Counted from the first letter of the stretch, positions 5,481 to 47,270 are shown. The stretch: DNA of 51,594 nucleotides from Ginglymostoma cirratum (GCA_024137785.1 JAHRHZ010000085.1:3664869-3716462), one strand, 5' to 3'. Notes: generated by a model from the letters alone, not told the origin. A program made the numbers and translations.

Positions 5481-7267
5481 GTAACATTGCCTTTGATATG
5501 AAAGGAACATATAGAAAGAAATGATTGAATGTATTACAAACACTTACAACTCTGATGCTTGTCATGAACAATTCCACCATTGTACGGTCACTCATGTTTC
5601 AAGGTTCTCTCACAACAACATCGTTAATTAACTATTTTTTGTCATATGTTACTAGATGGACATAGTTCTCTCATCTGTTCCTCAACATACTACTCTCAAA
5701 AGCTATCCCGAACACACTCCAAACCTCATCCTTCACAGCTTTCGTGTTCATTAGTTTGTCAAGCCTTTATCTAGATTGAATCCAGCCCTGATTGTTGCAC
5801 AAACTATGTACCACATGTCACAAATCTTTCTATTTAGTCTACACCTAACGTTACTCCTAGTGTTTGTGGCTTATAAGCAATTACCAATGATTCCTGCTTC
5901 TTGCTGTTCCTTAGCTTCACCATAGAAGATTCCTCATTTTATTATTCCAATCTCAAATCCTTCTTCACTGATCCCACCCATTACTACTCGCTAATACTAA
6001 CATATCTTCTTTTCCTTTGTCCCCTCCTAAATGTCATTGAATATTATTGAATAATCAGTTGTCCTGATTATCCTGCAGTGATGCGTTTGTAATGTCGATT
6101 ACGCCATCTCCATTCATCTCTATTTATTTGTTTTTAATCATCTACTTGTTGCAAGTAATGCATGCATTGAGTAGACTGCCCTTGAAATTGTCATTGTTAA
6201 CATGATTCTAAGCTTTGCTAATGCTTACCTTCATTTCCCCTGGTCTTGTCAGGTTGTGAAATCCTGTGTTTCACTGACTCAGGTGCAGAAGTGCAGATCA
6301 GAAGAGAAAAGAAATTCCTAATGATAAAGTACCTTGCATAAAACGTCTAAGAGCATATATGTAAATTAAAACTGAATTCTTGTATTTTGTTCTTTGAATG
6401 AAAGGAACACCATTGTTTATCCATTAAATTATTTCATTGCTCTCTGTATGACTATTAATGCTCCCCATTAATATGTTGCCTCGTGTTTCTATCTTAACAA
6501 AAAATCTTTAGATAGAAATTAACAATTTGCTGGAAAATGTTGTATGGCATTTTCTGTACCTTAACGATTCTATACAATTGGATTGCAAGTTCATCTTCAC
6601 TAAAAAATCTTCACTGTCCCATTTGTAGTCAATTAAATGGTGCAATTGAAATAACTATAGAGAGCTAATTATTTCATCACTGTTCAACTGTCCAATAAAC
6701 AATTGCTTTTATCAGTATAATTAACTCATAATTTATGCATTAAGCAAAAAAAAATGCCAGTTATAAACCAATTATTGCACAAATCAAAAATAGCATAGAA
6801 GTTTAGTAATTACACACAGTTTGAATTTGTACTTTTATTTCCAAATGGAGAAACATTCATTTATGGAACTTTATTTATCTTTGTAAAGGACATTCAGACC
6901 AATTCCATTTAGAAAATACACAATATCTGCAACTTGCTATAGGATGTAATGTTGAATGATTTCCGTATGAATGTTGAAAATTAATAATGGTGAATTAATG
7001 CAATTATTTTTTGCACAGGAAACGGAATTTAGCAGAGTTCCTCTTCTAAGTTTTAATACTTTCAACCATGAAGCTTCATAGATTATGAGCAGGGTTGCGT
7101 CAAAGCTTTCATTTATGTCCAGTGGGGAGAGGGAGATTGTATACAGAAGTTTTAAGCTATTAAGAATGTAACGAAGAGATAGCAAACTCAAGGAGACAAA
7201 TTGATTGCCAATGGTTACTTGGCTGCAGAAAATAGAAATTAATGAATGTTAAACCTTAACTTTTCAG

Positions 7268-7378
7268 AGAAAACAAGAAACAGCTGAAGACAGATTAATA
7301 TATGCTCATCTTGATCTGGTCCATTCAAAGGATGCTAAAATTCCTAAGCTGCAGGATGAAAGAACAGTATATGCCGAG
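7268..7378 (+). CDS. Gene 1, cytoplasmic exon with ITIM
   Basis: ttttcAG|...GCCGAG|GTacct, 111 nt, phase 0-0. RKQETAEDRLIYAHLDLVHSKDAKIPKLQDERTVYAE, containing ITIM LIYAHL and TVYAE. Confidence 0.88.
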
Positions 7379-7517
7379 GTACCTTTCTGTTCATATGTAT
7401 GAATAAAGTAACTATTTTCTTAATTACAATCATTTGGTTTTGAGATAACGTTGAGTAATTCTTAACTTTTAGTGAAATTTGAAACAATAATGATCTACTT
7501 TCAATGTTGTTTTACAG

Positions 7518-7646
7518 ACCAAACATAGCATGAGCAAATGCCAGCTGACTTATGCTGCTCTGAATTTGAATGGTCCCAGATTAACAGCGAAGCCAGAACA
7601 CACAACTGCAACTCCATTGTATGCAGCGGTGAAAGCCAGCAGCTAA
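7518..7646 (+). CDS. Gene 1, terminal coding exon with ITIM and stop
   Basis: ttttacAG|TKHSMSKCQLTYAALNLNGPRLTAKPEHTTATPLYAAVKASS*, containing LTYAAL and PLYAAV. Confidence 0.88.
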   Translation, partial: TKHSMSKCQLTYAALNLNGPRLTAKPEHTTATPLYAAVKASS

Positions 7647-16214: not shown

Positions 16215-17110
16215 GGGGTAACATAGTGTGGAACTAGAGGAACACAACGGGTCAGGCAGCATCAGAGGAGCAGGAAAGTTGACGTTTCAGGTCGGGACCC
16301 TTCATCAGAAATGGGGGAGGGGGAATGGGGTTATGAAATAAATAGAGAGAGGAGGCATGGGGCTGGTGGAGGTAGGTGGGATGGTGATAAGTGAGTGCAG
16401 GAAGGGAGTGGTGGGAATTGGTCAGTCAGGTGGGAGGAGCAGATATGTGGGAGAGAAGACAGACAGATTGTGTCAGGTCAAGGAGGCAGGGATGAGAGGG
16501 AGGTATGGTCATGGGATGAGGCGGGGGGGTGGGGCGATTTTGAAACTGGTAAAGTCCACATTGAGGCCATTGGGTTGTCGGCTCCTAAGCAGAATATGAG
16601 GTGCTGCTCCTTCATTTTCTGGGTGGTGTCATTGTGGCACTGGCGGAGGCCCAGGATGGACATGTCATCCAGGGAGTGGGAGGGGGAGTTGAAATGGTTT
16701 GCGACTTGAAGGTGTTGTCGTTTGTTGCGAACAGAGCCCAGGTACACCACAATGTGGTCTCCGAGCCTCCGCATTGTCTCACTGATGAAGAGGAGGCCAC
16801 ATCGGGAGCAGCAGACACACTAGACCATATTGGCGATGTGCGGGTGAATACCTGTCTGATGTGGAACGTTGTTTTGGTTCCTTGAATGGAGATAAGGTGG
16901 GAGGTGTAGGGGCTGGTGTAGCACTTCCTGCGGTTGCAGGGAAAGGTGCCTAGGTTGGTGGGGCTAGTCGAGATTGTGGAGCAGATGAGAGAGTCACAGA
17001 GAGGCTGGTTCCTCTGAAAGGCAGATAGGGGTGGGGAGGGGAAAATGTCCTTGAATGTGGGGTCAGATTTCAGGTGGTGGAAGTGGCGAAGAATGATACG
17101 TTGAATATGG
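16215..17110 (-). mobile_element. Penelope-like element 3' part (GIY-YIG + terminal repeat), left arm of an inverted pair
   Basis: RRLGDHIVVYLGSVRNKRQHLQVANHFNSPSHSLDDMSILGL. Confidence 0.88.
16281..16308 (-). ncRNA. Hammerhead ribozyme-like core in the Penelope terminal repeat
   Basis: Minus strand CTGATGA-agggtcccgacct-GAAAC-GTC; stem I is weak. Confidence 0.45.
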
Positions 17111-17114
17111 AGGT

Positions 17115-17835
17115 TGGTGGGGAGGTGCTACACCTGCCCCCACAACTCCACCTTCACCCCCATCCCAGGCCCCAGGTGTTCACCTGTACATCCACTAATG
17201 TGGTCTATTGTATCTGCTGTTCCTAATGTGGCCTCCTCTTCATCAGTGAGTCCAAGTGAAGGCTTGGAGACCACTTTGTGGAGCACCTATGCTCTGTTTG
17301 CGACAAACGACAACACCTCCCAGTCGCAAACTATTTCAACTGCCCCTCCCACTCCCAGGACAGCACGTCCATCCTGGGCCTCCTCCAGTGTCACAACGAT
17401 GCCACCCGGAAATTGGAGGAACAGCACCACATATTCCACCTCGAAAGCATACAATCCAATAGTCTCAATGTGGACTTTACTAGCTTCAAAATCTCCCCAC
17501 CCCCGACCTCATCCCAAGACCAGCTCCCCCTCTCGTCCCAGCCTCACGGACCTGTCCGTCTTCCCTCCCACCTATCGGCTCCTCCCACCTCACTGACCAA
17601 TCCCCACCGCTACGTACCTACACTCACTTTTACTAGCTTCCTGCCCGCTTCCTTGACCTGTCAGTCTTCTCTCCACTATCTACCTGCCATCACTGCCGCC
17701 CCCTCTCTATTTATTTCAGAGCCCCTTTCCTCTCTTCCATTTCTGAGTAATATTCCCTACCCAAAACGTCAAATTGCCTGCTTCTCTGATGCTGCCTGAC
17801 CTGCTGTTTTCCTCTAGCTCCACACCGCGTTATCT
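17115..17835 (+). mobile_element. Penelope-like element 3' part, right arm of the inverted pair
   Basis: EHLCSVCDKRQHLPVANYFNCPSHSQDSTSILGLLQCHNDATRKLEEQH; its end tcctctagctccacaccgcgttatctcc is the imperfect reverse complement of 16215-16241. Confidence 0.88.
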
Positions 17836-19360: not shown

Positions 19361-19910
19361 CTCAGTTGAATTTGGCGAGCTTTACTGTAGCAATTATTTT
19401 TCTGGGAACTGGGATGCAGATAGTCGAAGGTGCAGCAACATTTCTTGAGCTTGGATAATTAGTCCAGTTTGCTAAGTAAGGTTCAAATTCTGGAGATGAA
19501 ACTCTTTTTGCGGGACAGCAAGAGAGAGAGAGAATTGGGAACATGCCTTCCAGCTGCTGAAGTTCGGAACTGGTCCTCTCATGGTGTGAAGACAATGTGT
19601 GTAAAACCCTGAGTATCTGACAGATTGCTTTCAGTTTATGTTTAGTGGTCTCAAAGGCAAAGATCACGCTAATAAACAACACCATTGTGTACAGTCGCCC
19701 AATTTCCACTCATTGCCTTCACCATTCAGAGGTCAATCGGTTCAGGGAGCCTTTGAAAGGACCTAACCTGTTTATTGTCACATTTACACGAGTGCATTTA
19801 TAAACAATCGGTGAAATTTACAATACGATTTTGTTTTTATGTCCTGCACAATGTGCGATATTCCCTTTGATATCAATGTATAGATATTTTTGACATTCTT
19901 TGATTGTTGT

Positions 19911-19923
19911 CACTTCCGAGAAA
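19911..19923 (+). promoter_or_regulatory. Overlapping ETS (ACTTCCG) and GAS/STAT (TTCCGAGAA) motifs just before the putative start of gene 2
   Basis: cacttccgagaaa lies immediately upstream of the ATG at 19927; motif match only. Confidence 0.3.
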
Positions 19924-19926
19924 CCA

Positions 19927-19989
19927 ATGCTTGAATTTAGTCGCCTCCGTTATCTAGTGGTTTGTCAAATTGCAGCATGCTTACTTACC
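19927..19989 (+). pseudogene. Gene 2, putative leader (signal peptide) exon; splice donor not found
   Basis: MLEFSRLRYLVVCQIAACLLT lies ~330 nt upstream of the V exon. A 27-nt tandem duplication occupies the place where a donor is expected. Confidence 0.45.
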
Positions 19990-20034
19990 ATCAATTATTT
20001 CCACCACTTACTTATCATCAATTATTTCCACCAC
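19981..20034. repeat. 27-nt tandem duplication
   Basis: ttacttaccatcaattatttccaccac / ttacttatcatcaattatttccaccac. Confidence 0.85.
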
Positions 20035-20320
20035 CAGCAATGCACTAAAGTGTTTCCAGTTAACTTGGAGCGGGGTGACTAAGGTTATCAACTTAATGCA
20101 GCATGTTAGCACTTGATCTGTTCAATTACCTTTCGGCTTTAGGCGTTATTTACGTAGGTATATGCATTTAAGACTTTCACCAGATCAGTAGCAGAGGAAT
20201 ATATTCAATGTTTATTGTAGTTTCCGATTGCCTTTAGTTACATTTCAAAAGAACGGTTTTCTATTTACTCCTCCTAAATTATCTCTGTTGATAATCCCTA
20301 CCTGTGCTTATTTATGATAG

Positions 20321-20777
20321 TCTGAGACACTCTGACCCGTTCCTCCGTGCATAAGGTCCCAAAGCGTGTGACTAGAGTGAGAGGCGAAAACATTTCCACT
20401 AATTGCTCAAAGATAGCAAGGACTACAGATGCTGGAGTCAGAGATAACAAGTCATGGAGCTGAAGGAACACAGCAGGTCACAAGGGTCCCGACCCGAAAC
20501 GTCAACTTTCCCGCTCCTTTGATGCTGCCTGGCCTGCTGTGTTCCTCCATTAATCGCTCTGCATCTTTTCTCATTCCCACTGCAATGGTGGATGGGCAAC
20601 GCACAACTTTTGATGCGACTGCAATGAAAACTAAAATAGCGATGCCTTTTCTTTAAGGGTCTTCCAAGTTCTATCCGATCAGTGTGAGATTCCAATATTC
20701 CGGGGTTTATTACTGCGGCGTTAGAGAAGGGGCAGGGATGATGTCCAATGGCAGTGGGACTGAGCTCCGGGTAAACG
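20321..20777 (+). pseudogene. Gene 2, IgV-set exon with germline-joined J-like strand, disrupted
   Basis: gatAG|..*DTLTRSSVHKVPKRVTRVRGENISTNCS [insertion] ...QWWMGNAQ (frameshifted) ...*GSSKFYPISVRFQYSGVYYCGVREGAGMMSNGSGTELRVN|GTgagt. B-strand Cys, C-strand Trp, YYC and GSGT motifs are present; in-frame stops at 20323 and 20654. Confidence 0.85.
20409..20549. mobile_element. Short palindromic Penelope-derived element inserted in the V exon
   Basis: gaacacagcaggtca ... ggcctgctgtgttc arms; flanked by ccactaattgctc (20396-20408) and ccattaatcgctc (20547-20559), an imperfect TSD. Confidence 0.8.
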
Positions 20778-21014
20778 GTGAGTGATACCGAGGAACTGAA
20801 GTGCCCTCTGAAATTAATCAGTGAACAAGAAAATGTCAACAGTCCTGCAAATAATGCGGCAATTTCACCAGAAAGCATTTGCTGCAAATAAGGATAGTAG
20901 AACCATAAACCAGCACTGAAGAAATGCCTTTATTTTTATTTTCTTGTTCACTGGTTAATTTCATTAGGATGTAGTCCTCGTGTTTAGGGATTTTATGGTT
21001 AACACAAAAGGCTA

Positions 21015-21480
21015 GGGACTCTTGTGGTGCAGTGGTAATGGCCTTACCATTGAGTCAGGCAGCCTGAATTCAAGTTTCACTTGCTCCAGAGGTGCATAAT
21101 TACATCCCTGTACAAGTTTATTCAGCAATCTTAATGCACAAGGCAATTTGGTAAGGGGAGGCCCACTGCTACCTCACAGCACCAAGGACCTGGGTTTGAT
21201 TCCAGCCCGGAATGGTGGTCTGTATGGAGTTGCACATCCTCCCCATGCAAGTGTGGGTTTGTTCCAGGTATTTTGAATTCCTCCGACAATATATGAAATA
21301 TGTGCACATTAGGTAGATTGGCCATGCTAAATTGGCCATAGGTCCCAGGGATATGCAGGCTAGGGGAATTAGCTATGGTAAATATAGGGTTACAAGGATA
21401 AGGTAGGTCTAGGTGGGATGCTGTTTGGAGGGTTGGTGTGGACTCGATGGGCTGAATGGCTTGTTCCCATACTGTAGGGA
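21015..21480 (+). mobile_element. tRNA-SINE head followed by an HE1-type V-SINE
   Basis: gtggtgcagtggtaatg A box (~21025); V domain tgtatggagttgcacatcctcccc (~21220). Confidence 0.75.
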
Positions 21481-22484
21481 GCCTAAGGTGGAATGGATTT
21501 TGCAGTTAGCGCAGACACGCGTATAAGGTGAAGCGAGTGGCTGTTTAAGATGGCCTATAGATTGCAATTATATAAATTATGTTTTTTTTTCTCGAAATCC
21601 TGTCTGGAATTGCAACCAATCTCCCCCAGATAACTATAGAGCTTTCTATCAGATTCCTGGTTTGTAGGTAATGGAGAGAGTTTGCATAGAGAACATGCTT
21701 CACCACATGCTGCAGAAGACCCCTGCAGCAATAATGTCAGCAATTGTATGACATTTTGCATAACCATGGCTTGAAATAGAAGGACAATGTGCATAATTTA
21801 CACACTAGCACTCTGTTTTGAATCACCTCCTTCAATAAACGAATCATGGAAATGGCTAGCTTCTCCCACACTCAGGAGACCAATGTTACTTTTGCACAAC
21901 TGTTTCTTGATTCAAATCTGTGAAACAACAATGAAATTGTAAATATCAGTCAGAAAATGTGCTTTTAAATGAGGCATAGATGTAAAGGGAATGGGCAGCT
22001 GGGAAAAAATGATAACAAAGGGGAAATAGTGATATGATATACAACTAACAATGTTTTTCTTCATCTTCAGTATATTGAAGAAAAACTCTTGTAATGATAA
22101 TACATTATTTTCCGAGTCATATCTGATAGGTTCTTAATTGTAATCTATTTGTACAATTCAATTTTATTTATAGTAAACACCATCTTTACATTCTTATATT
22201 TTCTAGGCAGTAGAAACATTAACAACATTAATGCTCCTAATGCTAAAAGGAGATTAAAATTGAAGTTTCTTCTTAGCTCTATACATATTCGGAACATTTT
22301 AAAACGTTTAAAGGAAAATCACAATAAATATTTGAAGTTGGAAAGCTAAAGACCTTGGAGCTAAAGAGTGTTGGAGTGTCGGAGAATGACAGTAATTTTC
22401 AGCTATCCTGGGAAAGAGGTGCTTTTATATAAGGGACCAAACAGCTTCCTTTGGTACTATAAATCCTAATGGTCTACTTGGGTG

Positions 22485-22720
22485 GCATTGGCAATGTTCC
22501 CCTCCAAGTCACTCAGCACCCTGACTTGGAAATATATTGCCATTCCTTCACTGTTCATGGATCAAAATTCTGGAATACAAGGGCATTGTGGGTTTACTTA
22601 CAGCCTGTGGACTGCAGTGTTTCAAGCAGGCAGCTCACCACCTCTCTAGGATGATGAGAGGTAGGCAATAAAAAGTACTGGCCAGCCAGTGATGCCCACA
22701 TCCCATTAGTGAATAAAAAA
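22485..22720 (+). mobile_element. LINE 3' tail (same family as 11255-12280)
   Basis: gttccccctccaagtcactc-like block continues the 12250-12275 motif; ends gatgcccacatcccattagtgaataaaaaa. Confidence 0.65.
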
Positions 22721-23738
22721 AGTCAGATTTAGTAGAGGCTGACATGTACTTGTCAGTTTCTTTTTCTGCATAAATCTCCTTGAAACCTCCTTTCATCCTA
22801 CTCACCACTTATGTTTCCATATCAGCAAACTTAGAAATATTACATTTGGTCAGTATATCCAAATCAATTAGATACATTTTAGACAGTTTTAGTGACAGAA
22901 CCAACCCTTATCATGCCTTACTTGCAAAAGGACACCATATCGAACATCTTGAGAACTTGTTTAGTCTTACTGTCTTTTTTTCTGTCTGTCAGCCAATTTT
23001 CAATCCATAGCATTATATTAACCCAATTCCATGTTTTCTAATTCTGTTCACCAATCTACTTTGTGGGACTTTATCAAAAGCCTACATAAAATTCCTATAC
23101 AGCATATCTGCTGGTTCTTACTGGTTTCTACTGCAAGTACCATATTTATGGTAATGTGCTATTCAGTGTTGAAATTCTTGAGCTCAACGTAAAAGCAGGG
23201 AGGATGAATTGGACAAAGGTCACTGACCAAGTCAGATTAAAATAAATTAGTCCAACATTTCACCATGAATGAGTTATTCAATAAGATTTCACATTGCACC
23301 AACGAGGCTATAAGCAGGAAAGGGGTAACATGAATTAAATGCCTTCTCAAGAAATAAAAGGCATGAATTTTCAGAAAGGCCCAGTGTTGTGATGATAGAT
23401 TTATGGATATTTGTTTGGTCTTCCTGACCTTGTGTTTCTGATATAAACTCCTGCAGTGACGGTTGAAATTTTACATGAGCAGGTTCTGTTTAATTGGGCC
23501 ATAAATCTTTTGCAGTGCAGGCTTGAACTTTTCCCTCATCCAGTTTAGGTAAACAAAAGAATTAAAGAAACATGGTGTGATCAGCTTCAAATAATTCAAG
23601 CTAGTCATGGTGATAAAACATTCTGATGTAATTAAAATTCCAGTTGCTAAATGCTTTCCAGTCAGCCTCTCTTTCTTCTGCTGTGTTCAGTAATGGATGA
23701 AAAGTAATTTCAACTTATTTCCTTTAATTTATTTACAG

Positions 23739-24020
23739 TGCCACCAAATTCAGTGATGATTACTTGGCTGTCCTCTCCATTCATCACAATGTTCTGTACT
23801 ACAGCTAGCTTCTTCCCGACAGAAATTAACCTTATTTGGTATAAAAATGACAGCAAAATTACATCTAGAATAAATATTATAAAGTTCCAGAAAGAGGAGG
23901 GATTATATCAAGTTTCCAGCTCCCTGAACCAAGTGGAGATCTTGTCAGTTTATAGCTGTCAGGTTTTACACATTTCACTGGTAGACTCAGCCAATGACAA
24001 CTATTTAGTTTTGGATCAGG
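23739..24020 (+). CDS. Gene 2, Ig C1-set exon (open frame)
   Basis: tttacAG|...CAGG|GTaaga, 282 nt, phase 1-1. C1 motifs MFCTTASFFPTEINLIWYKN, GLYQVSSSL, YSCQVLHISL. Confidence 0.9.
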
Positions 24021-24612
24021 GTAAGAGTCTCAGCTTCTTCACATTCCCCTGAACTACACTTTGTTAAATTTAAAGGAGCAATACTTGCCCTATGTCTCCA
24101 ATAATCTGCAACAGAATGTTCTTCAAATCATAATGTTATTGATAAGAAATTGACTTCATGCTTCTAAAAAATGCTGGATATGATGGAAAGAAGCCATTTT
24201 GTTTATCTGACATAATCAAGTTCTTTGTCAATCTATTCTACTTGTTCCAAGCATCCATTCCTTCACAATAGATTCTCCCTTTGGGTTTTATTCCAATTCT
24301 CTTTCAAATGCTACCACTGAAACATCTTTGCTGCTTTTAGAAAAGAGATTCCAAGATGTGACATGCTGTATAAACAAAGGTTCCCCATTCCCTTGCCAAA
24401 TGTTGCCTGTTTGTCTGCCAATCACACTAAATCTGCATCCTTGGATAACCATCCATTTCACGACTGTAACTATTCCTTTTCTTTACCGTAACCAATGTTG
24501 ATTTTTGAGCAGCTATATCAATTTGTCTCAATCATTGCAGCACCATGAAGAGTGGTGCTAGCTTCTCCACTGATTCCACACAATGAAAATCCAATGTCCC
24601 TGGTGTCATTCC

Positions 24613-24680
24613 GGTATATATGTACATATATATATATATATGACACATATATATGTATGTGTGCATGTACACATATAGAT
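24613..24680. repeat. (TA)n/(TG)n microsatellite
   Basis: gtatatatgtacatatatatatatatatgacacatatatatgtatgtgtgcatgtacacatata. Confidence 0.85.
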
Positions 24681-25339
24681 TGTGAAGATATTCTGTTCTA
24701 GCAACCCATTCAGATTCCATAATTTAATCATCCTGAATCCCACTCGGATCTCCATTATTCTTCAGAATGAAATGCACCCCTTTAATTTTAAATTTTATTC
24801 ACCAAGTCTGTTGCATTTTTACAACACGCCAGTGCTTTTGATTATCTCATAATAGGTACAAAGAGGCTCCATATACTCCAAGACACATCCTTCATATATA
24901 TCTTTAACAACAAATGCTCTTCATAAAGAGAAGTGCCATTGATGTCTCGCCAATTAGAAAAGTAACTGTCTTAATGCTTCTCTAGCTTATAGATACATGG
25001 AGAGAGACAGGCAGAAGTGATGAGACATATTAAGCCCCACACATATATTCACAAAATCACCATGATCAAATCTTACTTCATAGAACATAAACATTAATAA
25101 TGTTAAACATGATCATTATGCTGATAAAATGCTAAAATGATCAGAAAAGGTAATTGTGTGTGCTTTAATCCATGTTTGCTCAGTTAATACTGCAATAGAA
25201 CCTCAGGATAAATGGAAAGTTTATTAGCTCAGTGAGATGCGATAGGTTTGATGTGTCAGTGTGGCCTGTTATCTGTTGTTCTGCTTATTTACCATCATTT
25301 GCGCTTTAAATAGTAATGTTCCACATTCTCTTAGTAAAG

Positions 25340-25447
25340 AAGAAAGTGTCTTCCTGTATTCCTTAGTGTCTAGCTGCATAGCAGGAGGTTTTATAATTTT
25401 GGTTCTGGCAATTTTTGTCAGGCGATGCAAAGTACAGAGATCTCGTG
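25340..25447 (+). CDS. Gene 2, transmembrane exon (acceptor uncertain)
   Basis: EESVFLYSLVSSCIAGGFIILVLAIFVRRCKVQRSR then G|GTaaga. The in-frame acceptor is a weak AAG at 25337-25339; the better TAG acceptors (25313, 25334) are out of frame by one base. Confidence 0.7.
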
Positions 25448-25889
25448 GTAAGACTGTGATTAAAAATTGGTTTTTAACATCTAAGTGTACTGCAATACTG
25501 TGGGAGTTAGACGGGGTAGGTTATTGCATCGACTGGGATCTGGATTTCGAGATTGCAGGCCACTGTACAGAGATTGTTTGTCCTACTGGTGGGGGAGGCT
25601 TGTGAAGAAGAAAGAAACAAAAATGAACCAGCCACATCAGGAAAACTTCGTCAAACAATAACTGTATTGTCAGGGTTTTTTTAAGATAAATGGCGATGAG
25701 AAATTGAACTGTGTATGTTAAATGTGACTAAGGCTGGATTGAATAAAGAAGGCACAGAAACCATTAATCAGGAATACAAACTAAAAGTAAGTACATCAAG
25801 ACAGAAAATTTTTCAACCATTCAACGGATCAGACACCATCAGTGGATATAAAGGCAAGGGTAATATTTCTGGCCATGAACACAGCAGAT

Positions 25890-26836
25890 ATGCTTACTAA
25901 GTTGGCAGATGACACCAAAATTGGAGGTGCAGTGGTCAGTGGAGAAGGTTACCTCAAAGTACAATGGGATCTTGATCAAGTGGGCCAGTGGTACGAGGAG
26001 TTCCAGAGGGAGTTTAATTTAGATAAATGTGAGGTGTTGCATATTGGAAAGTCAAATCAGGGCAGGACTTATACACATAATGGTAAGGACTTAATGGGGA
26101 GTGTTGCTGGACAAAGAGACCTTGGAGTGCAAGCTCGTAGTTCCTTGCCAATGGAGTCACAGGTAAACAGGATAGTGAAGAAGGAGCTTGGTATGCTTGC
26201 ATTTATTGGTCAGTGCATTGAGTATAAGATTTGGGTGGTCATGTAGCGGCTGTGCAGGCCACTGGTTAGGCCACTTTTGGAATATTGCATGCACTTCTGG
26301 TCTTTCTGCCAAAGGATGGATGTTGTGAAACTTGAAAGGGCTCAGCAAAGATTTACAAGGATGTTGCCGGGGTTGGAGGGTTTGAGCTATAGGGAAAGGC
26401 TGAATAGACTGGGGCTATTTTCCCTGGAGCATCGGAGGCTAAGGGTTGACCTTATAGAGATTTTTAAAATCATGAGGGGCATGGATACAGTAAATAGACA
26501 AGTTATTTTCCCTAGGGTGGGGAAGTCCAAAACTAGAAGTCATAGGTTTAAGGTGAAAGGGAAAGATTTAAAAGGGACCTAAGGGAAAACTTTTTCATAC
26601 AGAGGGTGGAGCGTGTATGGATTGAGCTGCCAGATGAATGGGTGGAGGCTGGTGCAATTACAGCATTTAAAAGGCATCTGGATGGGTATATGAATAGAAA
26701 AGGTTTGGAAGGATATAGGTCAAATGCTGGCAAATGGGACTAGATTTACTTATGACATCTAGTCGGCATGGGACAGTTGGACTAAAGGGTCTGTTTCTGT
26801 GCTGTATATCTTTTAGACTCTATGACTCTATGACTG
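25890..26836 (+). mobile_element. CR1 LINE 3' fragment
   Basis: KLADDTKIGG, FNLDKCEVLHIG, LERAQQRFTRMLPG; (actctatg)n tail. Confidence 0.9.
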
Positions 26837-27017
26837 TATAACACAGACCTGGAACATTAACTTTCTTTTTATTTCCACAAAATAATGTCTGACTTGCTTT
26901 GTTTCAGTAATAAAAATGATAGTCCTGCCTGTTAATGTCTGAACATCTTCTGAGTGTTGGCTGTTGCTGCTCTGTACTGGCAAATTAACTCCATGTCTTA
27001 GTTCAGAGCTTTAACAG

Positions 27018-27074
27018 AAAAAAAATGTACCGCCTGAATTAAGCAAACTCAGAACTTGAATGTCCATTGAGCAG
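27018..27074 (+). pseudogene. Gene 2, candidate decayed short cytoplasmic exon
   Basis: tttaacAG| acceptor. With one A removed from an A8 run it reads EKNVPPELSKLRT*MSIEQ, phase 1-0, ending at gagcag|ggagt (gtgagt minus one T). Its position matches gene 1 exon 3547-3590. Confidence 0.3.
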
Positions 27075-27229
27075 GGAGTGGACATGCATCAATCCTTATC
27101 CCATTTGGCCAGGATATGAAAAGTAACTATGAATTAGAATTAGCATTCAGATAAATGACACGAGCTCAAAGTTAGTGGTCTCCATTGTCCTCAGCAGAAA
27201 GTTACTTATCAGCCAATGTCATTTAAGGT

Positions 27230-27470
27230 GGAAAAACAGAAATTGCTGGAAAAATTCAGCAGGTCTGGCAGCATCTGTGGAGAGGAAATGGAGTTAGTGT
27301 TTTGGGTCAAGTGACCCTTCTTTAGAACTTTACAGAACTTCTTCAGAAGGGTCACTGGACCTGAAACGTTAACTCTGTTTTCTTACCACAGATACTGCCG
27401 GACCTGCTGAGTTTTTGTTGCAATTTCTTGTTTTGTTTCTGATTTGCAACATCAGTAGTTCTTTCATTTT
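27230..27470. mobile_element. Short palindromic Penelope-derived element (older subfamily)
   Basis: cagcaggtctggcagcatctgtgg ... ccacagatactgccggacctgctg arms; imperfect TSD aatgtcatttaagg (27215-27228) / aatgacattcaagg (27481-27494). Confidence 0.75.
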
Positions 27471-27609
27471 CATTTAATTTAATGACATTCAAGGCTGTGA
27501 TGTGCTGTATTTGTTCACCCCAAATATGCTTTGTTGTTACTTTCTTTAATCAATTTTGGTTTTGTTTCAATTTGGTAGGTAACTAATATTCCTCACAAAT
27601 TCTCCTCAG

Positions 27610-27720
27610 ATCATTCATGCAGGAAAGGAGGAGGGTCCAACTTATGCTGATCTCTACTTCAATGATCAGAGGAACATTTGGAAACCCAAAAGTGAGAAAG
27701 GTACCATTGTTTATGCAGAC
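27610..27720 (+). CDS. Gene 2, cytoplasmic exon with two tyrosine motifs
   Basis: ctcctcAG|IIHAGKEEGPTYADLYFNDQRNIWKPKSEKGTIVYAD|GTaaat; 111 nt, phase 0-0, the same size as gene 1 exon 7268-7378. Confidence 0.8.
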
Positions 27721-27923
27721 GTAAATTGCCATTTTATCCAGGACCAACTCTGAAACAGGTATGGGATAACAGCAACATGAGTTAATTCACTGATAAAAGG
27801 TACTGCAGATGCTGGAGAATCCGAGATAACAAGCATGGGGCTGGATGAACACAGCAGGTCAAGCAGCATCATAGGAGCAGGAAAACTTGACGTTTCGGGC
27901 CTAAACCCTTCATCAGACAGGTG

Positions 27924-28323
27924 NNNNNNNNNNNNNNNNNNNNNNNNNNNNNNNNNNNNNNNNNNNNNNNNNNNNNNNNNNNNNNNNNNNNNNNNNNNNN
28001 NNNNNNNNNNNNNNNNNNNNNNNNNNNNNNNNNNNNNNNNNNNNNNNNNNNNNNNNNNNNNNNNNNNNNNNNNNNNNNNNNNNNNNNNNNNNNNNNNNNN
28101 NNNNNNNNNNNNNNNNNNNNNNNNNNNNNNNNNNNNNNNNNNNNNNNNNNNNNNNNNNNNNNNNNNNNNNNNNNNNNNNNNNNNNNNNNNNNNNNNNNNN
28201 NNNNNNNNNNNNNNNNNNNNNNNNNNNNNNNNNNNNNNNNNNNNNNNNNNNNNNNNNNNNNNNNNNNNNNNNNNNNNNNNNNNNNNNNNNNNNNNNNNNN
28301 NNNNNNNNNNNNNNNNNNNNNNN
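27924..28323. other. Assembly gap (400 N)
   Basis: Run of N. Confidence 0.99.
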
Positions 28324-28330
28324 CACCTGT

Positions 28331-28358
28331 CTGATGAAGGGTTTAGGCCCGAAACGTC
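28331..28358 (+). ncRNA. Hammerhead ribozyme-like core (mirror copy on - strand at 27889-27916)
   Basis: CTGATGA-a-GGG(tttagg)CCC-GAAAC-GTC; palindromic ACGT at helix III. Confidence 0.5.
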
Positions 28359-28569
28359 AAGTTTTCCTGCTCCTATGATGCTGCTTGACCTGCTGTGTTC
28401 ATCCAGCCCCATGCTTGTTATCTCTTGAGTTAATTCACTGATTGGTGTAAGCAATTCGTAGTGAGTGTAGACCATTGACTTTTGGAATCTGATGAATGTC
28501 AAAGTTTTAAGGTTTAAGGTTAATAGTTAATCTTTCACTGAAATCTGTTCTAGCTTACATTTATTATTT

Positions 28570-29495
28570 AGAATCATTGAGTCATACAATACAGAAACAA
28601 GACCTTCGGCCCAAATCATCCATGCCGAACAATTTCTTAAACTGAATGAGTCCTATTTGCCAGTATTTGGCCTGTACCTCTCTAAACTTTTCCTATCCGT
28701 TTACCTGGCGAAATTTCTTTTAAATGTTGAAATTGTGCCCACCTGTATGCTTCGTCTGGCAGCTCATTCTATGTAATCACCATCCTGTGTATAAAAAAAA
28801 CTCCTCAGTTCCTTTGTAAATCTTTCCACTTTCACTTTAAACTTATGCCTTCTAGTTTTGGACTCCCCTACCCTGGGGATAAGACCTTGGCTGTTCACCT
28901 TATCCAAGCCCCTCATGATTATGTAAATCTCTATAAAGTCACTCCTCAGCCTCCTACACTGCAGGAGAAAAAATGTCCCTGCCTATCCAGCCTCTCCTTA
29001 GAACTTCCATTCTTAGTAATGTCCTTGTAAATCTTTTTTGCACTCTTTCCAGTTTAATAACGTCCTTCCCATATGAGGGCAACCAGAATTGTACACAGTG
29101 CTCCAGATGTGGTCTTAACAATGTCTTGTACAGCTGTAACATGACATCCCAACTCCTGTACTCATTACTCTGACTGATGAAGGCAAGCGTGTTAAATGCC
29201 TTCTCCACCATCTTGTCTACCTGTGACGCCACTTTCAAGGAACTATGTACCTGCACACCTAGGTCTCTCCGTTTGACAGAACTCCTCAGGGCCCTAACAG
29301 TGTAGTCTGCCCTGGTTTGTCTTACCAATATGCATCAATTCACATTTATCTACATTAAATTCCATCCGCCATTTCTCGGCCCACTGGCCCGGCTGATCAA
29401 GATTCCATTGTACTCTAATATACCTTCTTCACTGTACACTAAACCACACATTTTGGTGTCATCCATAAACTTCCTAACCATGCCTTCTATATTCC
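28570..29495 (-). mobile_element. CR1 LINE 3' fragment
   Basis: RDLGVQVHSSLKVASQVD...RPHLEHCVQFW...LERVQKRFTR. Confidence 0.9.
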
Positions 29496-31084
29496 CTACA
29501 TCTTAAAGTGAAAATTTATTTCGGTCTGAGTCAGGAATTAAGAAGCTGTCAACTGAAATGACTGCTGCAGTATACCAATTAGGTAGCTTGCTTGAAATGG
29601 TTTCTTGAAACAAAAATCTCGTCTGCTTAGATTTCTACTTTGCATAAATGCAGATGGTCTTCTATGTATGGGAATATGTGAGCTTGGGGACAGCAGCTCC
29701 TCATTGGATGCATATCAATGCAGTGTGTTTGCTTAGGAGTGTGGTGAGTGAGAGAATTTGGCGTGGTGAAGGAGGATACGCTTTGCCTTAACTTTGCTTT
29801 TAGATAAGAGCATTGTGTGTTCTGGATCAACTTTAGAATTACAGAACAATTACAAGGATTAGCAGTGTACTGACAAAATGATTATATGTTTTTGAAGAGC
29901 ATCAGGTGTATATTTGACAGGTGAGTATTTTGCTTGCCTGTCTTAGAAAATCATGTAATTTGTGCTTCTGTATAAGGTTTTTATAGCATTCATACGGTTT
30001 ACCAGCAAGATCAATCATTATTTGATTAGTTGTATTTATTCAAAATACCTGTAACCTCATTAAGAAAAATGATGCATTGATTAACAATAAATAATGTTCT
30101 GGGACTGCAGAATGGCAGTTACCAAGAAAATCAGTTGCGATTCAGCGGAAACATATCTTCGTTAACTGAATGCAGTATGAGGAGCTTCAACTCAGTTTTG
30201 TTCAGCTGGAGGATGAACTGCAGGTACAGTGACACGCTGTGAGGAAGTAACTTGCCTGGACAGTTTGTTCTGGGGACAGTCACATTCCTTCAGCTAAGAA
30301 GAACTTTAGAGGTTGTCAGTTGTTACTTATAGGATGTAGACTGCAGTCAGAGAATGACAAGGAATCAACATGCAATGGTAGGAAGACTCGGCCCTTGAAA
30401 TTTGAGAACAAAGTCAATGAGGAGAAGGACTGCAAGGTGGATGATTTGACTGGCAATGTGGGAAAAAAAGTTCTGCTTCGTGGGACTAGACTTCATAACT
30501 TATTGAAGAAGTGGGTTCTGGTTCTATAGGCTCAACATAAGCCAGGCTGCAATGAGTATCCTGGCCAGTCATACATGCAGGACTGTGAACAGGTCTACGA
30601 AGTAATAGAGGAGTTGGGAGCTTCAGGTGAAGAGAAATCTCAGAAGTGCAAAAGCAAATTTGTGTCATTAGAATAGAATAGTCATTTTTGTAAAGCTAAG
30701 CAGCCAGGAAGAGATAGACAAAGCAACAAAATTGTGCATCAGCAAATAAGGCCTTTGTAAGGAATATACATTTTAAAAAGGTATCTCTATCAGCATGCAA
30801 GAAGCATTGGAATGAAAAATGGTTGACTGACAGTTATAAAGATGGAAAGGTGATTTGATTGCGATCATGGGGAAATGTTTACAAAGTGGTGGAATTTGGA
30901 AAATAAATGCCCCAGGCTATGTAATATTTTGGAATGAGAGATAGAATAGCAAACAAGAAGGTGGTGCCATGACAATAAAGTGGGACATAAGGACCAAATT
31001 GATACCAGATCTGGTCTCAGTGTTGGTGGGAATGCGGAAAGAAAAGAGTCAGGAAACACTGTTATACATGTAACACTGTTATAC

Positions 31085-33678
31085 TGAGGTACTATGGGCT
31101 GAGGTTAGGAACAGGAAGGGAGAGGTCTCCCTGTTCGGAGTTTTCTATAGGCCTTTGAATAGTTCCAGAGATGTAGGGGAAAGGATAGCAAAAATGGTTC
31201 TGGATAGGAGCGAAAGTAACAGGGTAGTTTTTATGGGGGACTTTAACTTTCCCAATATTGACTGGAAACACTAACGTTCAAGTACTCTAGATGGGTCAGT
31301 TTTTGTCCAATGTGTGCAGGAGGGTTTCCTGACACAGTATGTAGACAGGCCAACAAGAGGCGATGCCACATTGGGTAATGAACCAGGCCAGGTGTTGGAT
31401 TTGGACATAGGTGAGCACTTTGCTAATAGTGACCACAATTTGGTTACATTTACTTTAGCGATGGAAAGGGATAGGCATATACTGCAGGGTAAGAGTTATA
31501 GCTGGGGGAAAGGCAATTATGAGGTGATTAGGCAAGACTTAGGATGCATAGGATGGGGAAGGAGACTGCAGGGGCTGGGCACAATTGAAATGTGGAGCTT
31601 GTTCAAGGAACAGCTACTGCGTGTCCTTGATATGTACGTACCTGTCAGGCAGGGAGGAAGTGGTCGACCGAGGGAACCATGGTTTACTAAAGAAGTTGAA
31701 TCTCTTGTCAAGTGGAAGAAGGAGGCTTATGTAAAGATGAGGCGTGAAGGCTCAGTTAAGGTGCTTGAGAGTTACAAGTTAGCCAAGAAGGACCTAAAGA
31801 GAGAGCTAAGAAGAGCCAGGAGGGGACATGAGAAGTCTTTGGCAGGTAGGATCAAAGAAAACCATAAAGCTTTCTATAGGTATGTCAGGAATAAAATAAT
31901 GACTAGAGTAAGATTAGGGCCAGTCAAGGACAGTAGTGGGAAGTTGTGCGTGGAGTTCAAAGAGATAGGAGAGGCGCTAAATGAGTATGTTTCATCAGTA
32001 TTCACACATGAAAAAGACAATGTTGTCAAGGAGAATACTGAGATACAGGCTATTAGACTAGACAGGATTGTGGTTCATTAGGAGGAGGTGTTAGCAATTC
32101 TGGAAAGTGTGAGAATAGATAAGTCCCCTCGGCCGGATGGGATCTATCCTAGGATTCTCTGGGAAGCTAGGAAGGAGATTGCAGAGCCTTTGGCTTTGAT
32201 CTTTATGTCGTCATTGTCTACAGGAATAGTGCCAGAAGACTGGAGGATAGCAAATGTTGTCCCCTTCTTCAAGAAGGGGAGTAGAGACAACCCTGGTGAT
32301 TATAGACCAGTGAGCCTTACTTCAGTTGTGGGTAAAGTGTTGGAAACGATTATAAGAGATAGGATTTATAATCATCTGGAAAGGAATAATTTGATTAGGG
32401 ATAGTCAACACAGTTTTGTGAAGGGTAGGTCGTGCCTCACAAACCTTATTGAGTTCTTTGAGAAGGTGACTAAACAGGTGGATGAGGGTAAAGCGGTTGA
32501 TGTGGTGTATATGGATTTCAGTAAAGCATTTGATAAAGTTCCCCACAGTAGGCTATTGCAGAAATTACGGACGCATGGGATTGAGGGTGATTTAGCGGTT
32601 TGGATCAGAAATTGGCTAGCTGTAAGAAGACAGAGGGTGGTGGTTGATGGGAAATGTTCATCCTGGAGTTCAGTTACTAGTGGTCTACCACAAGGATCTG
32701 TTTTGAGGCCACTGCTGTTTGTCATTTTTATAAATGACCTGGATGAGGGCATAGAAGGATGGGTTAGTAAATTTGCAGATGACACTAAAGTCGGTGGAGT
32801 TGTGGGTAGTGCGGAAGGATGTTGCAGGTTACAGGGGGACATAGACAAGCTGCAGGGCTGGGCCGAGAAGTGGCAAATGGAGTTTAATGCGGAGAAGTGT
32901 GAGGTGATTCACTTTGGAAGGAGTAACAGGAATTCAGAGTACTGGGCTAATGATAAGATTCTTGGTAGTGTGGACGAGCAGAGAGATCTCGGTGTCCATG
33001 TGCATAGATCCCTGAAAGTTGCCACTCAGGTTGATAGGGTTGTTAAGAAGGCGTACAGTGTGTTGGGTTTTTTATTGGTAGAGGGATTGAGTTTCGGAGC
33101 CGTGAGGTCATGTTGCAGCTGTACAAAACTCTGGTGTGGCCGCACTTGGAGTATTGCGTACAGTTCTGTTCACCACATTATAGGAAGGATGTGGAAGCAT
33201 TGGAAAGGATGCAGAGGAGATTTACCAGGATGTTGCCTGGTATGGAGGGAAGGTCTTATGAGGAAAGGCTGAGGGACTTGAGGCTGTTTTCGTTAGAGAA
33301 GAAGGTTAAGAGGTGACTTAATAGAGACATACAAGACGATCAGAGGATTGGATAGGGTGCACAGTGAGAGCCTTTTTCCTTGGATGGCGATGGCTAGCAC
33401 GAGGGGGCTTAGCTTTAAATTGAGGGGTGATAGATGTAGGACAGATGTCAGAGGTAGATTCTTTACTCAGAGAGTAGTAAGGGCATGGGATGCCTTGACT
33501 TCAGTAGTTGTCGACTCGCCGACTTTAAGGGCATTTAAGTTGTTGTTGGATAAACGTATGGATGATGGTGGAATAGTGTAGGTTAGATGGGCTTCAGATT
33601 GGTTTCACAGGTCAGCGCAACATCGTGGGCCGAAGGGCCTGTACTGCGCTGTAATGTTCTATGTTCTATGTTCTATGT
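31085..33678 (+). mobile_element. Young 5'-truncated CR1 LINE (endonuclease end + RT + tail)
   Basis: GDFNFPNIDW, YRPVSLTSVVGK, VDVVYMDFSKAFDKVPH, SKFADDTK in ORFs 31314-32081 and 32088-33272; (ttctatg)n tail. Confidence 0.95.
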
Positions 33679-34691
33679 TGATCGTGCCCAAACAGTACAT
33701 ATAACATTGAAAAGAAAATTAAAAATAAATTATTGGGCTCTATTAGAAAGATAAGATATGAACTGAAGGGATATTTAAACTTCAAATGGATTGGGAAAAT
33801 CACATTAGCAGAGGTGGCCTCAAAGATGAGTTTGTTGAATATTTACACAAGAGTATATTTTTCACCTATACATTGCAGAATAGATTTGTATCTTTTCCTG
33901 AATTAAGGTTAATTGTGACCTAATGCCAAAAATGCAACCTGTAAATTAGTGATTATGACTTCATTGAATTCCATGCCAAATTTGAAAGTGACATACAATA
34001 ATGACATGCATGAATCTTAATCTTAAGAATAACGAATTACATTGATGTTAGGTGTGAACTGCTCATGGTTAATTGGTAAATAGATTAAGTGCCATGCAGG
34101 TAAATGAACAGCCGGAAACATTTAAATAAACAATACACATATTGAATAAAAACAAGTTCTATTGAAGAACAGGAACTCAGAAAAAGATCTCATCTATGAC
34201 TCACTAAGGAAATTCAGTGTGGTGTTTGTTCACAAGAAGAAGCTTGAAATATAGCAATAACAGTCAAAAGGTTAATAATTGTGAATGTTTTAGAATAGAG
34301 AAAAACATTGATATGAACTAAAAGAATAAAATACGAGATTGAAAGATAAAGATAAAATCAGATTGCAAATGCATTAAGAAGCATATAAAATGAAGGTAGG
34401 AGCTAAAATATATGATAACCCCTTCGGAACACAGTCAGAAGAAATTAGCATGAGGAAATGAGGAAATTGCAGAAGCATCATTTAAAAGTTTTATGTATCT
34501 TCACAGTGCAAGATGCAAATTTCAAACCAGAAGTGTACAGTAACATCCTACCTGAAAGAAAGTGAGGAAATTAATATAGCAGTCAAGAAATATTGAAGAA
34601 ACATATCAGACTAAAATCTGACAAAACCCAAGAATAAGATGGCCTACCCCTGATAGTTCTAAAAGAGATACCTGCAGAGAAAGTAGTTGCA

Positions 34692-34914
34692 GAGATAGTA
34701 GGAACTACAGATGCTGGAGAATCCAAGACAACAAGGTGCAGAGCTGGATGAACACAGCAGGCCAAGCAGCATCATAGGAGCAGGAAAGCTGACATTTCGG
34801 GCCGAGCTTCTTCAGGTGATTCTGAAGAAGGGTCTAGGCCCAAAACATCAGCTTTCCTGCTCCTATGATTCTGCTTGGCCTGCTGTGTTCATCCAGCTCT
34901 GCACCTTGTTGTCT
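34692..34914. mobile_element. Short palindromic Penelope-derived element
   Basis: Inverted arms around ~34816; TSD gagaaagtagttgca (34677-34691) / gagaatgtagttgca (34915-34929). Confidence 0.85.
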
Positions 34915-36035
34915 GAGAATGTAGTTGCACTAACTATGACATTCCGATATTCCTGGGCTTTGTGAATGTCCCATCAAATTTTGCATTAGTAAGTCTTGTA
35001 TTACTGTTTAGGAAGCATAACAAAGAGAACACAAGCCAATAAGCCTAAGAAAATGCCACAATGAGCAGCACCGGGGCTTCAACTATTTAGAGTCTATGTC
35101 AATGGCCTAGATGAATAGACAAATAAAAATGTATTTGGCTTTGTTGATGGTGCTAAGCTAGTCACAACTGCATGCTGTGAGGAGGTCATAGAAAAGCTTA
35201 AGAGTGACATTGGCAAGTTATGTGTGTAGGCAGCAAGTTGCCTCATGGTTTTTCAATGGTGAAGTTGTTCACCTTGATAGTGAGAATAGAAAAATAACGC
35301 ATGCATAATAAATTTAATTCATACAATTTCTAAGAATTGATATTTGGTGTGGTAGAGAATTTTGCTTGCTAAATGATGTAAAAAGTCAGCCTGTGATGCA
35401 CCAAGCATTTGGAAGGCACGTGGTTTGTCAGATTTTGTTACGAGGTGACTGCAGTATGAGAATAAAGAGGTCTTGCTGCACTTATGAATAGTTTTAGGTA
35501 AGAACACATTGTAAGTGTTGTGTGTAGCTTTCAACTCGATATCCACAAAATAATTTTCTTACTTCGGAGACAGTGGACTGAATATTCACTGAACTGCTCC
35601 CCAGCTGAAATGGTTGTACTGTGTTGAGAGATTGAATAAATTGGAGTTGGATTCTCTGGAGTTTTGAAAAATAACAGGTAATTCCATTCAGACAAATATG
35701 ATTCTGGAAGGGGAGTATCAGGAGAGTGGGTCAATTATTTGGGGCTGAATTGAGGATGATTTATTTCACTCATTTATTTCTGAATCTGTGGAATTATTTA
35801 CCCTGTAGGTTGTGAATGAGCTATTGTTGAACAAATTAATGGCATGTACATAAATTATTCTGCTCTCCGAGTTAGTACAGAAAGGGATATTGGCAGAGGG
35901 TGAAAATTTCAGCTGAAGTGAGATTAGCTGTGGTGACATTGGATAGTATAAGAGTCACCAAGGGCTGATTGATTTACTCCTGCTCCTACTTCTTCTGTCC
36001 ATGGTTTCCTGAGATAATCATCATTGCTTCCATAG

Positions 36036-36173
36036 ATCAAGCAAGGGACAGATGAGAAAACATCTTCTGCATTTTCAGATCTCACTGCTTCTGAGAAAAT
36101 GTCGAGAAGGAAAAAGAAGAAAAGTGGAGCATGCCAAGATCACAGTAAACCAGTGAAACCTGGATCGTCATGA
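36036..36173 (+). pseudogene. Gene 2, decayed terminal exon
   Basis: cttccatAG|IKQGTDEKTSSAFSDLTASEKMSRRKKKKSG...*. TSSAFSDL aligns with gene 1 LTYAALNL (TAT>TCT). A +1 frame reads VEHAKI, a probable former VEYAKI (TAT>CAT). Confidence 0.55.
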
Positions 36174-47174: not shown

Positions 47175-47270
47175 TGAGATAACAAGGTGTAGAGATGGAT
47201 GAACACAGCAGGCCACGCAGCATCAGAGGAGCAGGAAGGCTGATATTTCGGGGCTAGACCCTTCTTCAGG
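47175..47270 (-). mobile_element. Penelope-derived terminal fragment
   Basis: gagataacaaggtgtagag..ggatgaacacagcaggcc...ccttcttcag, as at 34720-34815. Confidence 0.75.

Follow-up and report, generated by a model that had tools for sequence, protein, structure and literature searches.

The stretch of the Ginglymostoma cirratum genome analyzed here (GCA_024137785.1 JAHRHZ010000085.1:3664869-3716462; 51,594 nt, hereafter the window, within which all positions are counted) carries on its plus strand a receptor gene made of leader, variable (V), C1-set, transmembrane (TM) and tail exons, which, judging from its sequence, most likely represents an unprocessed pseudogene (a null allele at best) within a SIRP-like receptor family of chondrichthyans. 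The introns have been kept, and the coding sequence has a frameshifting insertion, lacks an invariant residue and contains one or two nonsense codons. A sequence-only reading of the window had proposed a working V-C1 receptor with inhibitory signalling at this place, a proposal that has to be abandoned because the copy cannot make a V domain. The exon organization that it described, namely a germline V exon with a built-in joining (J)-like strand, one C1, a TM segment and a tail with tyrosine motifs, proves to be the normal architecture of the family and not the outcome of a local deletion.

Gene model and closest relatives

The window (40% G+C, with many repeats and a single 400-N gap at 27924-28323) was compared by tblastn with 178 retrieved family and SIRP-like proteins, and the homology model of the gene was built on these matches. 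The best-matching proteins are P0164 of Chiloscyllium plagiosum (293 aa) and P0167, its isoform lacking the TM segment (282 aa), which are NCBI pipeline models annotated as 'tapasin-related protein-like' isoforms X2/X3. The exons in the window follow the order of these proteins (leader, V(J), C1, TM, and tail) with 60-68% identity per exon. Against P0164/P0167, 13/20 residues are identical in the 5' part of the V exon and 47/72 in its 3' part; against P0164, 63/93 are identical in the C1 exon and 21/35 in the TM exon; and the tail exon shares 29/47 residues with the C-terminus of P0164/P0167, where the stop has the same position and both proteins end in ...QDQL. Since the exons are collinear with single proteins such as P0164, the possibility that the V and C exons belong to a separate immunoglobulin (Ig) light chain or T-cell receptor (TCR) locus, which would have undermined the sequence-only reading, did not materialize.

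In a tree of 57 C1 domains, the C1 of the window is the sister of that of P0164 (support of 96 in the Shimodaira-Hasegawa-like approximate likelihood ratio test), and its branch is longer than that of P0164 (0.28 vs 0.11). By sequence, the window copy is a member of a subfamily with two tail tyrosines, and P0164, with which it shares the collinear leader, V(J), single C1, TM and two-tyrosine tail, is its closest known member. What separates them is the V domain, which is intact in the relative (Cys, Trp, and Cys) but interrupted by an insertion, a deletion of the Trp and stops in the window copy.

The leader (signal-peptide) exon lies at 20103-20157 and encodes MLALDLFNYLSALGVIYV plus 1 nt (donor G/GTATAT, phase 1); it is identical to the N-terminus of P0167 at 14/18 residues by tblastn, and P0004 matches it too. 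A leader starting at the ATG at 19927 was rejected, as homology gives no support there and places the leader at 20103. The coding region ends with the TGA at 27751-27753. No family exon was found 3' of this codon in 28324-36173 by three-frame reading or by tblastn, and only LINE and other repeats are present there. The span of 19927-36173 previously assigned to the gene is therefore too wide at both ends.

Lesions in the V exon

The V(J) exon (20321/20327-20777, followed by the phase-1 donor G/GTGAGT) has two possible acceptors, the ancestral AG at 20319-20320 and an alternative AG at 20325-20326 that moves the exon start to 20327. It is collinear with residues ~20-126 of P0167, with 65% identity outside the lesions. 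The first lesion is a palindromic mini-element of 137 nt (20409-20545), an internally deleted copy, which sits at the Cys23-equivalent codon, that of the first Ig cysteine. This codon is carried by the left target-site duplication, TCCACTAATTGCTC (20395-20408), and has become CGC (Arg) in the right one, TCCATTAATCGCTC (20546-20559). The two 14-nt duplications, which define the boundaries of the insertion, are identical at 12/14 positions, and both translate to the family pattern 'S-I/T-N-C/R-S' around the first Ig cysteine. Together with one duplication the element adds 151 nt, which produces a +1 frameshift; when both are removed, the two halves of the exon share a frame and the exon measures 300 nt from 20327, which fits a phase 1-1 exon.

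The second lesion is an in-frame deletion of 18 nt, located at 20591-20596 between the Asp codon (20591-20593) and a Gly codon, by which the equivalent of VYWWKK, including the V-domain Trp62, has been lost (a 6-residue gap in tblastn against P0164, P0167, and P0010). Trp62 is invariant in 26/26 aligned relatives, and the deleted stretch is free of gaps in 25/26 of them, P0132 having a 2-residue gap nearby. An 'LQWW' in an alternative frame was considered as a frameshifted version of the tryptophan and rejected, because P0164 shows a clean gap of six codons in the frame of the YYC motif. Two in-frame stops add to the damage. A TAA (20654-20656) occupies the position of a Gln in most of the closest relatives ('PFHQGSSEF' vs 'PFL(stop)GSSKF'), and a TGA (20323-20325; 'IV(stop)DTLTRSSVHK' aligned to 'IASDTVTPFSLHQ') corresponds to a Ser codon in P0167. 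The latter is the second codon of the exon when the ancestral acceptor is used and is bypassed only via the downstream AG at 20325-20326. Of the three residues expected in an intact V domain (Cys47, Trp62, and Cys106 in P0167 numbering), Trp62 is gone and the codon of Cys47 has been split off by the insertion, and in-frame stops are present as well. No other V exon was found anywhere in the window, including by tblastn with the 178 proteins. A normal transcript is therefore unable to encode a V domain.

The 3' part of the V exon (...FQYSGVYYCGVREGAGMMSNGSGTELRVN) preserves the germline-joined organization that had drawn attention to this locus. YYC (20708-20716), a loop of 11 residues resembling complementarity-determining region 3, and the J-like strand GSGTELRV (20750-20773) are contiguous in one exon, in which GSGTELRV is followed by N and then by the G/GTGAGT donor. 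Thus, the motif described earlier is real, with a loop of 11 rather than ten residues, whereas the exon that carries it is not intact. The V exon has no V-J intron, no heptamer of a recombination signal sequence (RSS) at the YYC/J junction and no nonamer, just as was originally claimed; the sole heptamer-like string, at 20680, lies within the body of the exon. The piece from YYC to J finds its best PDB match in a TCR alpha V-J segment (E 8.7e-4).

The lesions might be assembly errors, or they might mark a single null haplotype while an intact working allele exists in the species. N gaps occur nearby, insertions of mobile elements are often polymorphic, and the other exons are intact, all of which would fit this explanation. 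However, a 137-nt element with a 14-nt duplication that has diverged at 2 positions is a biological insertion and no artefact of assembly, and it is not very recent; sequencing errors, moreover, are unlikely to account for four independent lesions within a single exon. We consider this explanation improbable.

C1, TM, and tail exons

Downstream of the V exon, the reading frames of the C1, TM, mini- and tail exons have stayed open, and their phases agree. The single C1-set exon (23739-24020; phase 1-1, acceptor ttatttacAG/, donor G/GTAAGA) matches the Pfam C1-set model with an E value of 6.8e-9 (36.4 bits, cut-off 21) and keeps the core Cys, Trp, Cys, and His (Cys146, Trp160, Cys200, and His204). 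Two conserved sites have been replaced, the invariant Pro131 by Ser and the Gly of SGIN by Arg. The best PDB matches of this exon are the alpha-3 domain of MR1 (4e-8), UrIg2 (3e-6), and SIRP-gamma (2e-4). The earlier statement that there is exactly one C1 exon holds, as no remnant of a second C1 was found in the window with the 178 family and SIRP-like proteins.

The TM exon (25340-25447) encodes EESVFLYSLVSSCIAGGFIILVLAIFVRRCKVQRSR plus 1 nt, contains no charged residue within the TM segment and ends with the donor G/GTAAGA. Its phase-1 acceptor, AG at 25338-25339, was assigned by frame, because the AG at 25333-25334, which adjoins the boundary equivalent to that of P0164, is 1 nt out of frame. 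Between TM and tail, P0164 has a mini-exon of 15 residues (GDAVAEEIDSRVEEQ, phase 1 to phase 0). A probable juxtamembrane counterpart in the window is the stretch 25511-25575 or 25520-25575 (...DWDLDFEIAGHCTEI/GTTTGT; phase 1 to phase 0), which is the best match to the mini-exon of the family (...EEQ) within 25448-27609 and ends on GT. The mini-exon that is clear in P0164 is probably represented in the window by a weakly similar sequence, whose match score of 20 was equalled in 3/200 shuffles and which we regard as moderate evidence. Retention of the 63-nt spacer, which has no stop, would also join this sequence in frame to the TM exon. Splicing TM directly to tail would not match the phase of the acceptor at 27609. 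Another AG, at 27620-27621, would be compatible, but homology with P0164 (VIHKGK vs IIHAGK) supports the phase-0 acceptor together with a mini-exon, and direct splicing is therefore disfavoured.

The last coding exon (27610-27753) encodes IIHAGKEEGPTYADLYFNDQRNIWKPKSEKGTIVYADVNCHFIQDQL and ends with the TGA given above. It contains PTYADL (27637-27654), which resembles an immunoreceptor tyrosine-based inhibitory motif (ITIM) with Pro at -2, and IVYADV (27706-27723), a canonical ITIM. The two tyrosines are 23 residues apart, which, on the evidence of the sequence, matches the spacing expected of tandem ITIMs ((I/V/L/S)xYxx(L/V/I)) that may engage tandem SH2 domains. A TM exon and a tyrosine-motif exon are thus present, as anticipated, although the latter is single and not one of several, the mini-exon being devoid of tyrosine motifs.

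State of the locus

Several observations weigh against a pseudogene. The ~590 nt of coding sequence downstream of the V exon are without lesion. A relative-rate test, restricted to sites that eight outgroup members conserve, counted 29 changes unique to the window and 19 unique to P0164 (p = 0.19), i.e. no significant acceleration, and the test therefore leaves room for some constraint on the 3' exons. Besides, the lesions have been seen in one assembly, and the insertion may be a polymorphism. Identity to P0164 is uniform across the exons.

Such observations raise the possibility that the gene is still used, either by skipping the V exon, so that the leader is spliced to C1 and a signal peptide-C1-TM-ITIM protein results, or because the 3' exons are under selection in some other transcript. 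The leader donor and the C1 acceptor are both of phase 1, the exons from C1 to the tail remain open and in matching phase, all three to four lesions are confined to the V exon, the relative-rate test revealed no significant acceleration, and exon-skipping isoforms are found among the relatives (P0167 without the TM exon and P0155 without C1). Confinement of the lesions to the V exon is, however, only marginally unlikely by chance (~0.04-0.11 by our own estimate, for 2-3 lesions and 300 of 890 nt), the C1 exon has been altered at the conserved Pro131 and SGIN positions, and members of the family lacking V are not known. Continued use in either form therefore appears quite unlikely.

We thus favour inactivation of the copy. 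In the course of events that we propose, the mini-transposon would have inserted at the Cys23 codon and shifted the frame of the V exon by +1, and the 18-nt deletion of the invariant Trp and one or two stops would also have accumulated there, such that neither the V domain nor a full receptor would be made from a normal transcript. The downstream exons, which are still open and in phase, fit a fairly recent inactivation.

A family of V-C1 receptors in cartilaginous fishes

A HMMER scan of 1.84 billion representative sequences with the C1 exon yielded 236 matches at E<=1e-3. The best matches with a single C1 are 47-60% identical to the exon and have their C1 at residues ~110-220 of proteins of 240-450 aa. 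The matched proteins come from sharks and rays as models of the NCBI pipeline, and their names are inconsistent (tapasin-related-like, PTPNS1/SIRP-alpha-like, NCR3LG1-like, SIRP-beta-1-like, and CD276 homolog), SIRP-alpha-like being the most common. A word-indexed search with P0151 retrieved 32 relatives at E<=1e-10 with V-set and C1-set Pfam domains, from sharks, rays, and a chimaera (Heterodontus, Heptranchias, two species of Scyliorhinus, Hemiscyllium, Chiloscyllium, Carcharodon, Cetorhinus, Mobula, Hemitrygon, and the chimaera Callorhinchus). Several family genes occur per genome, located on a single chromosome.

An alignment of 26 members from 12 species defines the shared architecture. 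The leader is followed by a V domain, in which Cys47, Trp62, and Cys106 are invariant and which has the strand NG(T/N/S)GTxLxV, by a VPPTP linker, by a single C1 whose Cys, Trp, Cys, and His are likewise invariant, by a TM segment, by the mini-exon ...EEQ, and by a tail in which the tyrosine motifs number up to four. A single C1 is found in 26/26 aligned members and in nearly all members retrieved, the few models with two being P0028 (Amblyraja) and P0006 (Callorhinchus), the latter of which may merge two genes. The intact paralogs thus give no indication that a second C1 was deleted at this locus, a possibility that would have overturned the earlier account. Putative activating members, which that account recommended looking for, do occur in the form of P0007, P0044, and P0132, with an Arg in the TM segment and a short tail.

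The gene is part of a multigene cluster, as had been supposed, since exons of a second family member lie upstream on the same strand. Its TM exon is at 2989-3129 and shows ~50% identity to P0160 and P0077; its tail is encoded by two repeat-like exons (7253-7399 and 7494-7643) with the motifs LIYAHL, TVYAEV, LTYAAL, and PLYAAV. The V and C1 exons of this second member must precede the start of the window.

Intact members of the family are type I membrane proteins: behind a signal peptide they have a germline V(J) domain and one C1, followed either by an uncharged TM segment and a tail with two or four tyrosine motifs or by an Arg-containing TM segment and a short tail. By analogy with SIRP-alpha, the V domain would bind a ligand, perhaps CD47, Src-family kinases would phosphorylate the tail tyrosines, and the tandem-SH2 phosphatases SHP-1/SHP-2 would dock on the tail and damp activation of the cell. 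Members with Arg in the TM segment may, as is the case for SIRP-beta, pair with an adaptor bearing an immunoreceptor tyrosine-based activation motif for signalling.

Two kinds of unusual models were encountered among the relatives. The top matches of the C1 exon, P0001 (Mobula birostris) and P0002 (Carcharodon carcharias), are proteins of 1105-1428 aa annotated as 'titin-like' or uncharacterized, with 8-9 tandem C1-set-like stretches, i.e. an unusual poly-C1 architecture. P0010 (Scyliorhinus canicula XP_038661939, 450 aa) contains its stalk-TM-tail block twice ('KPEENFPSALLVGFAAGGL...' two times), probably because the block was duplicated in tandem or because genes were merged in the model.

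No paper on SIRP-like V-C1 receptors of cartilaginous fish was found in the literature searched, and the family is apparently still undescribed and without a formal name. The suggestion of a poorly described shark family is therefore sound in this respect, although annotation pipelines do recognize its members, mostly as SIRP-alpha-like.

Relationship to SIRPs and other immunoglobulin superfamily receptors

Judged by sequence comparison, the family looks most like SIRPs. Among the proteins looked up, the nearest non-chondrichthyan matches of the C1 exon are SIRP-like proteins of lungfish, coelacanth, and pig; the best PDB match of one intact member is SIRP-alpha (E 6e-14); and in the ESM Atlas the closest two clusters bearing a name are PTPNS1-like and SIRP-alpha (score 0.96, 203-205 shared features), which we take as a lead only. 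Mammalian SIRPs are defined by a V and two C1 domains with either an ITIM tail or a basic TM residue (PMC12975943). The chondrichthyan family resembles them in placing at the N-terminus, ahead of its C1-set region, a V domain whose G strand is J-like, and in having inhibitory members with an (I/L)xYADL-type tail beside short-tailed members with a basic TM residue, as in the pair SIRP-alpha/SIRP-beta. It differs from them in the number of C1 domains (one instead of two), the types of domain being the same, and the subfamily of the window gene differs from SIRP-alpha in having two tail tyrosines instead of four and a Pro at -2 of the first motif. Among the retrieved proteins, the sarcopterygian SIRP-like ones have no ITIM tails, and the window contains no conserved flanking gene.

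Some results count against the SIRP assignment. The label rests on best matches and on names given by pipelines, and in a search with the family profile an IgA heavy chain (3.9e-33) and UrIg2 (2.3e-32) came out ahead of SIRP-alpha (7.5e-28). It is conceivable that the family is not related to SIRPs and represents either a V-C1 lineage related to B7, butyrophilins, or tapasin, or a membrane-bound relative of the UrIg/UrIg2 relics. Pipeline names such as tapasin-related-like, NCR3LG1-like, and CD276 homolog, the profile ranking just mentioned, and the high positions of B7-H6, PD-L2, and butyrophilins in a non-redundant fold search all point in that direction. However, whole-chain profile scores sum several C1 domains, and those of the Ig heavy chain and UrIg2 are inflated for this reason. 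When a single intact member is used as the query, SIRP-alpha tops the PDB matches, the nearest outgroup C1 domains looked up are annotated as SIRPs, and SIRP-alpha clusters come first in the ESM Atlas. The coexistence of members with an ITIM tail and members with an Arg in the TM segment parallels SIRP-alpha/SIRP-beta. A position outside the SIRP lineage is accordingly rather unlikely in our opinion, if somewhat less so than continued use of the locus.

UrIg and UrIg2 are non-rearranging, antibody-like and dimer-forming proteins of sharks with the architecture V-C1-C2-C3, whose linkage is to the MHC or the Ig/TCR complex and for which no ITIM is mentioned (PMC12227049). With the family they have in common, in elasmobranchs, a VJ exon joined in the germline and, after it, a C1-type domain; UrIg2 is among the best PDB matches of both the C1 exon and the family profile. 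In contrast to their three C domains (PDB 9dmx), the window gene has one C1 followed by a TM segment and a signalling tail, and this difference of architecture, together with the lack of any ITIM in the published description, speaks against a membrane-bound UrIg relative.

Ig light chains and TCR chains have the same two-domain ectodomain of V and C1 with YYC...GxGTxLxV. Unlike them, the window gene has neither an RSS nor a V-J split and does have a TM segment and an ITIM tail; in addition, the F/W of their FGxG motif is replaced by N in the family, which creates an NG(T/S/N)G sequon. The description of the gene as shaped like a TCR or Ig light chain is therefore right as to domain types but not specific, as profiles match the Ig heavy chain, UrIg2, and SIRP-alpha alike.

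Structural comparisons of the intact relative were also made. In the AlphaFold model of P0167, the predicted local distance difference test score is >90 across most of V and C1. The top PDB matches of an intact member's model in Foldseek are Fab light chains (E ~1e-15 over ~220 columns), with low template-modelling scores (0.3-0.45) because the angle between the domains differs. In the non-redundant fold search (VIA), the ectodomains of Rst/Neph1, B7-H6, PD-L2, butyrophilin, and nectin are on top with Z of 15-16. These model-based searches suggest a generic V+C ectodomain of the immunoglobulin superfamily and do not discriminate among the candidates. B7-H6/NCR3LG1, butyrophilins, and tapasin/TAPBPL, whose names have been given to some members, accordingly share a V+C-type ectodomain (Z ~15-16), a likeness that is only structural and architectural, whereas the best sequence matches and the pairing of tail and TM types favour SIRPs.

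Mini-elements and other repeats

The element in the V exon (20409-20545) is 84-91% identical to sequences at 16237-16302, 17754-17814, 27797-27899, 28348-28425, 34690-34895, 47195-47263, and 51514-51594. One palindromic copy (27797-28424, with no strand assigned) lies in the 3' flank of the gene downstream of the stop and has the assembly gap at its centre, 27823-27923 and 28324-28424 being perfect reverse complements of each other (101/101). Since the gap begins 170 nt past the stop codon, it is crossed by no reading frame and leaves the gene model unaffected. The mini-element family carries long target-site duplications, of 14 nt at 20395/20546 and, as seen by eye, of 9 nt (GTAGTTGCA) around the 34.7-kb copy.

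Searching 19900-28450 against Rfam detected no hammerhead or other family at E<=0.1. A TA/CA microsatellite in the C1-TM intron (24600-24680) gave sub-threshold matches to mir-297, mir-466, mir-3149, and mir-1277, whose 28-41 bits compare with gathering scores of 81-100 and which are low-complexity artefacts. Fragments of LINE reverse transcriptase were observed in the TM-tail intron (25860-26760) and 3' of the gene (31275-33578). The pipeline models P0101 and P0014 of relatives match many places in the window because they include transposon-derived stretches.

Implications

Taken by itself, the locus is one more, probably dead, member of a family already annotated by pipelines. Its practical value lies in a corrected gene model and in a caution that this copy should not be included among functional receptors. 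It also shows birth-and-death turnover in the cluster, with the mini-transposon family as one agent of gene loss. Non-rearranging VJ-C1 genes have been sought as kin of the gene into which the RAG transposon inserted (PMC12227049). One could speculate that an inhibitory chain consisting of C1 without V, serving as a decoy or partner subunit, is expressed from the locus and that the V-C1 form represents the ancestral shape of SIRPs, close to a non-rearranging precursor of antigen receptors, but we hold this to be a long shot. The decayed locus itself adds little to the questions of the RAG precursor and of SIRP origin; it is the existence in cartilaginous fishes of a large V-C1 family, with both inhibitory members and members with a charged TM segment, that bears on them.

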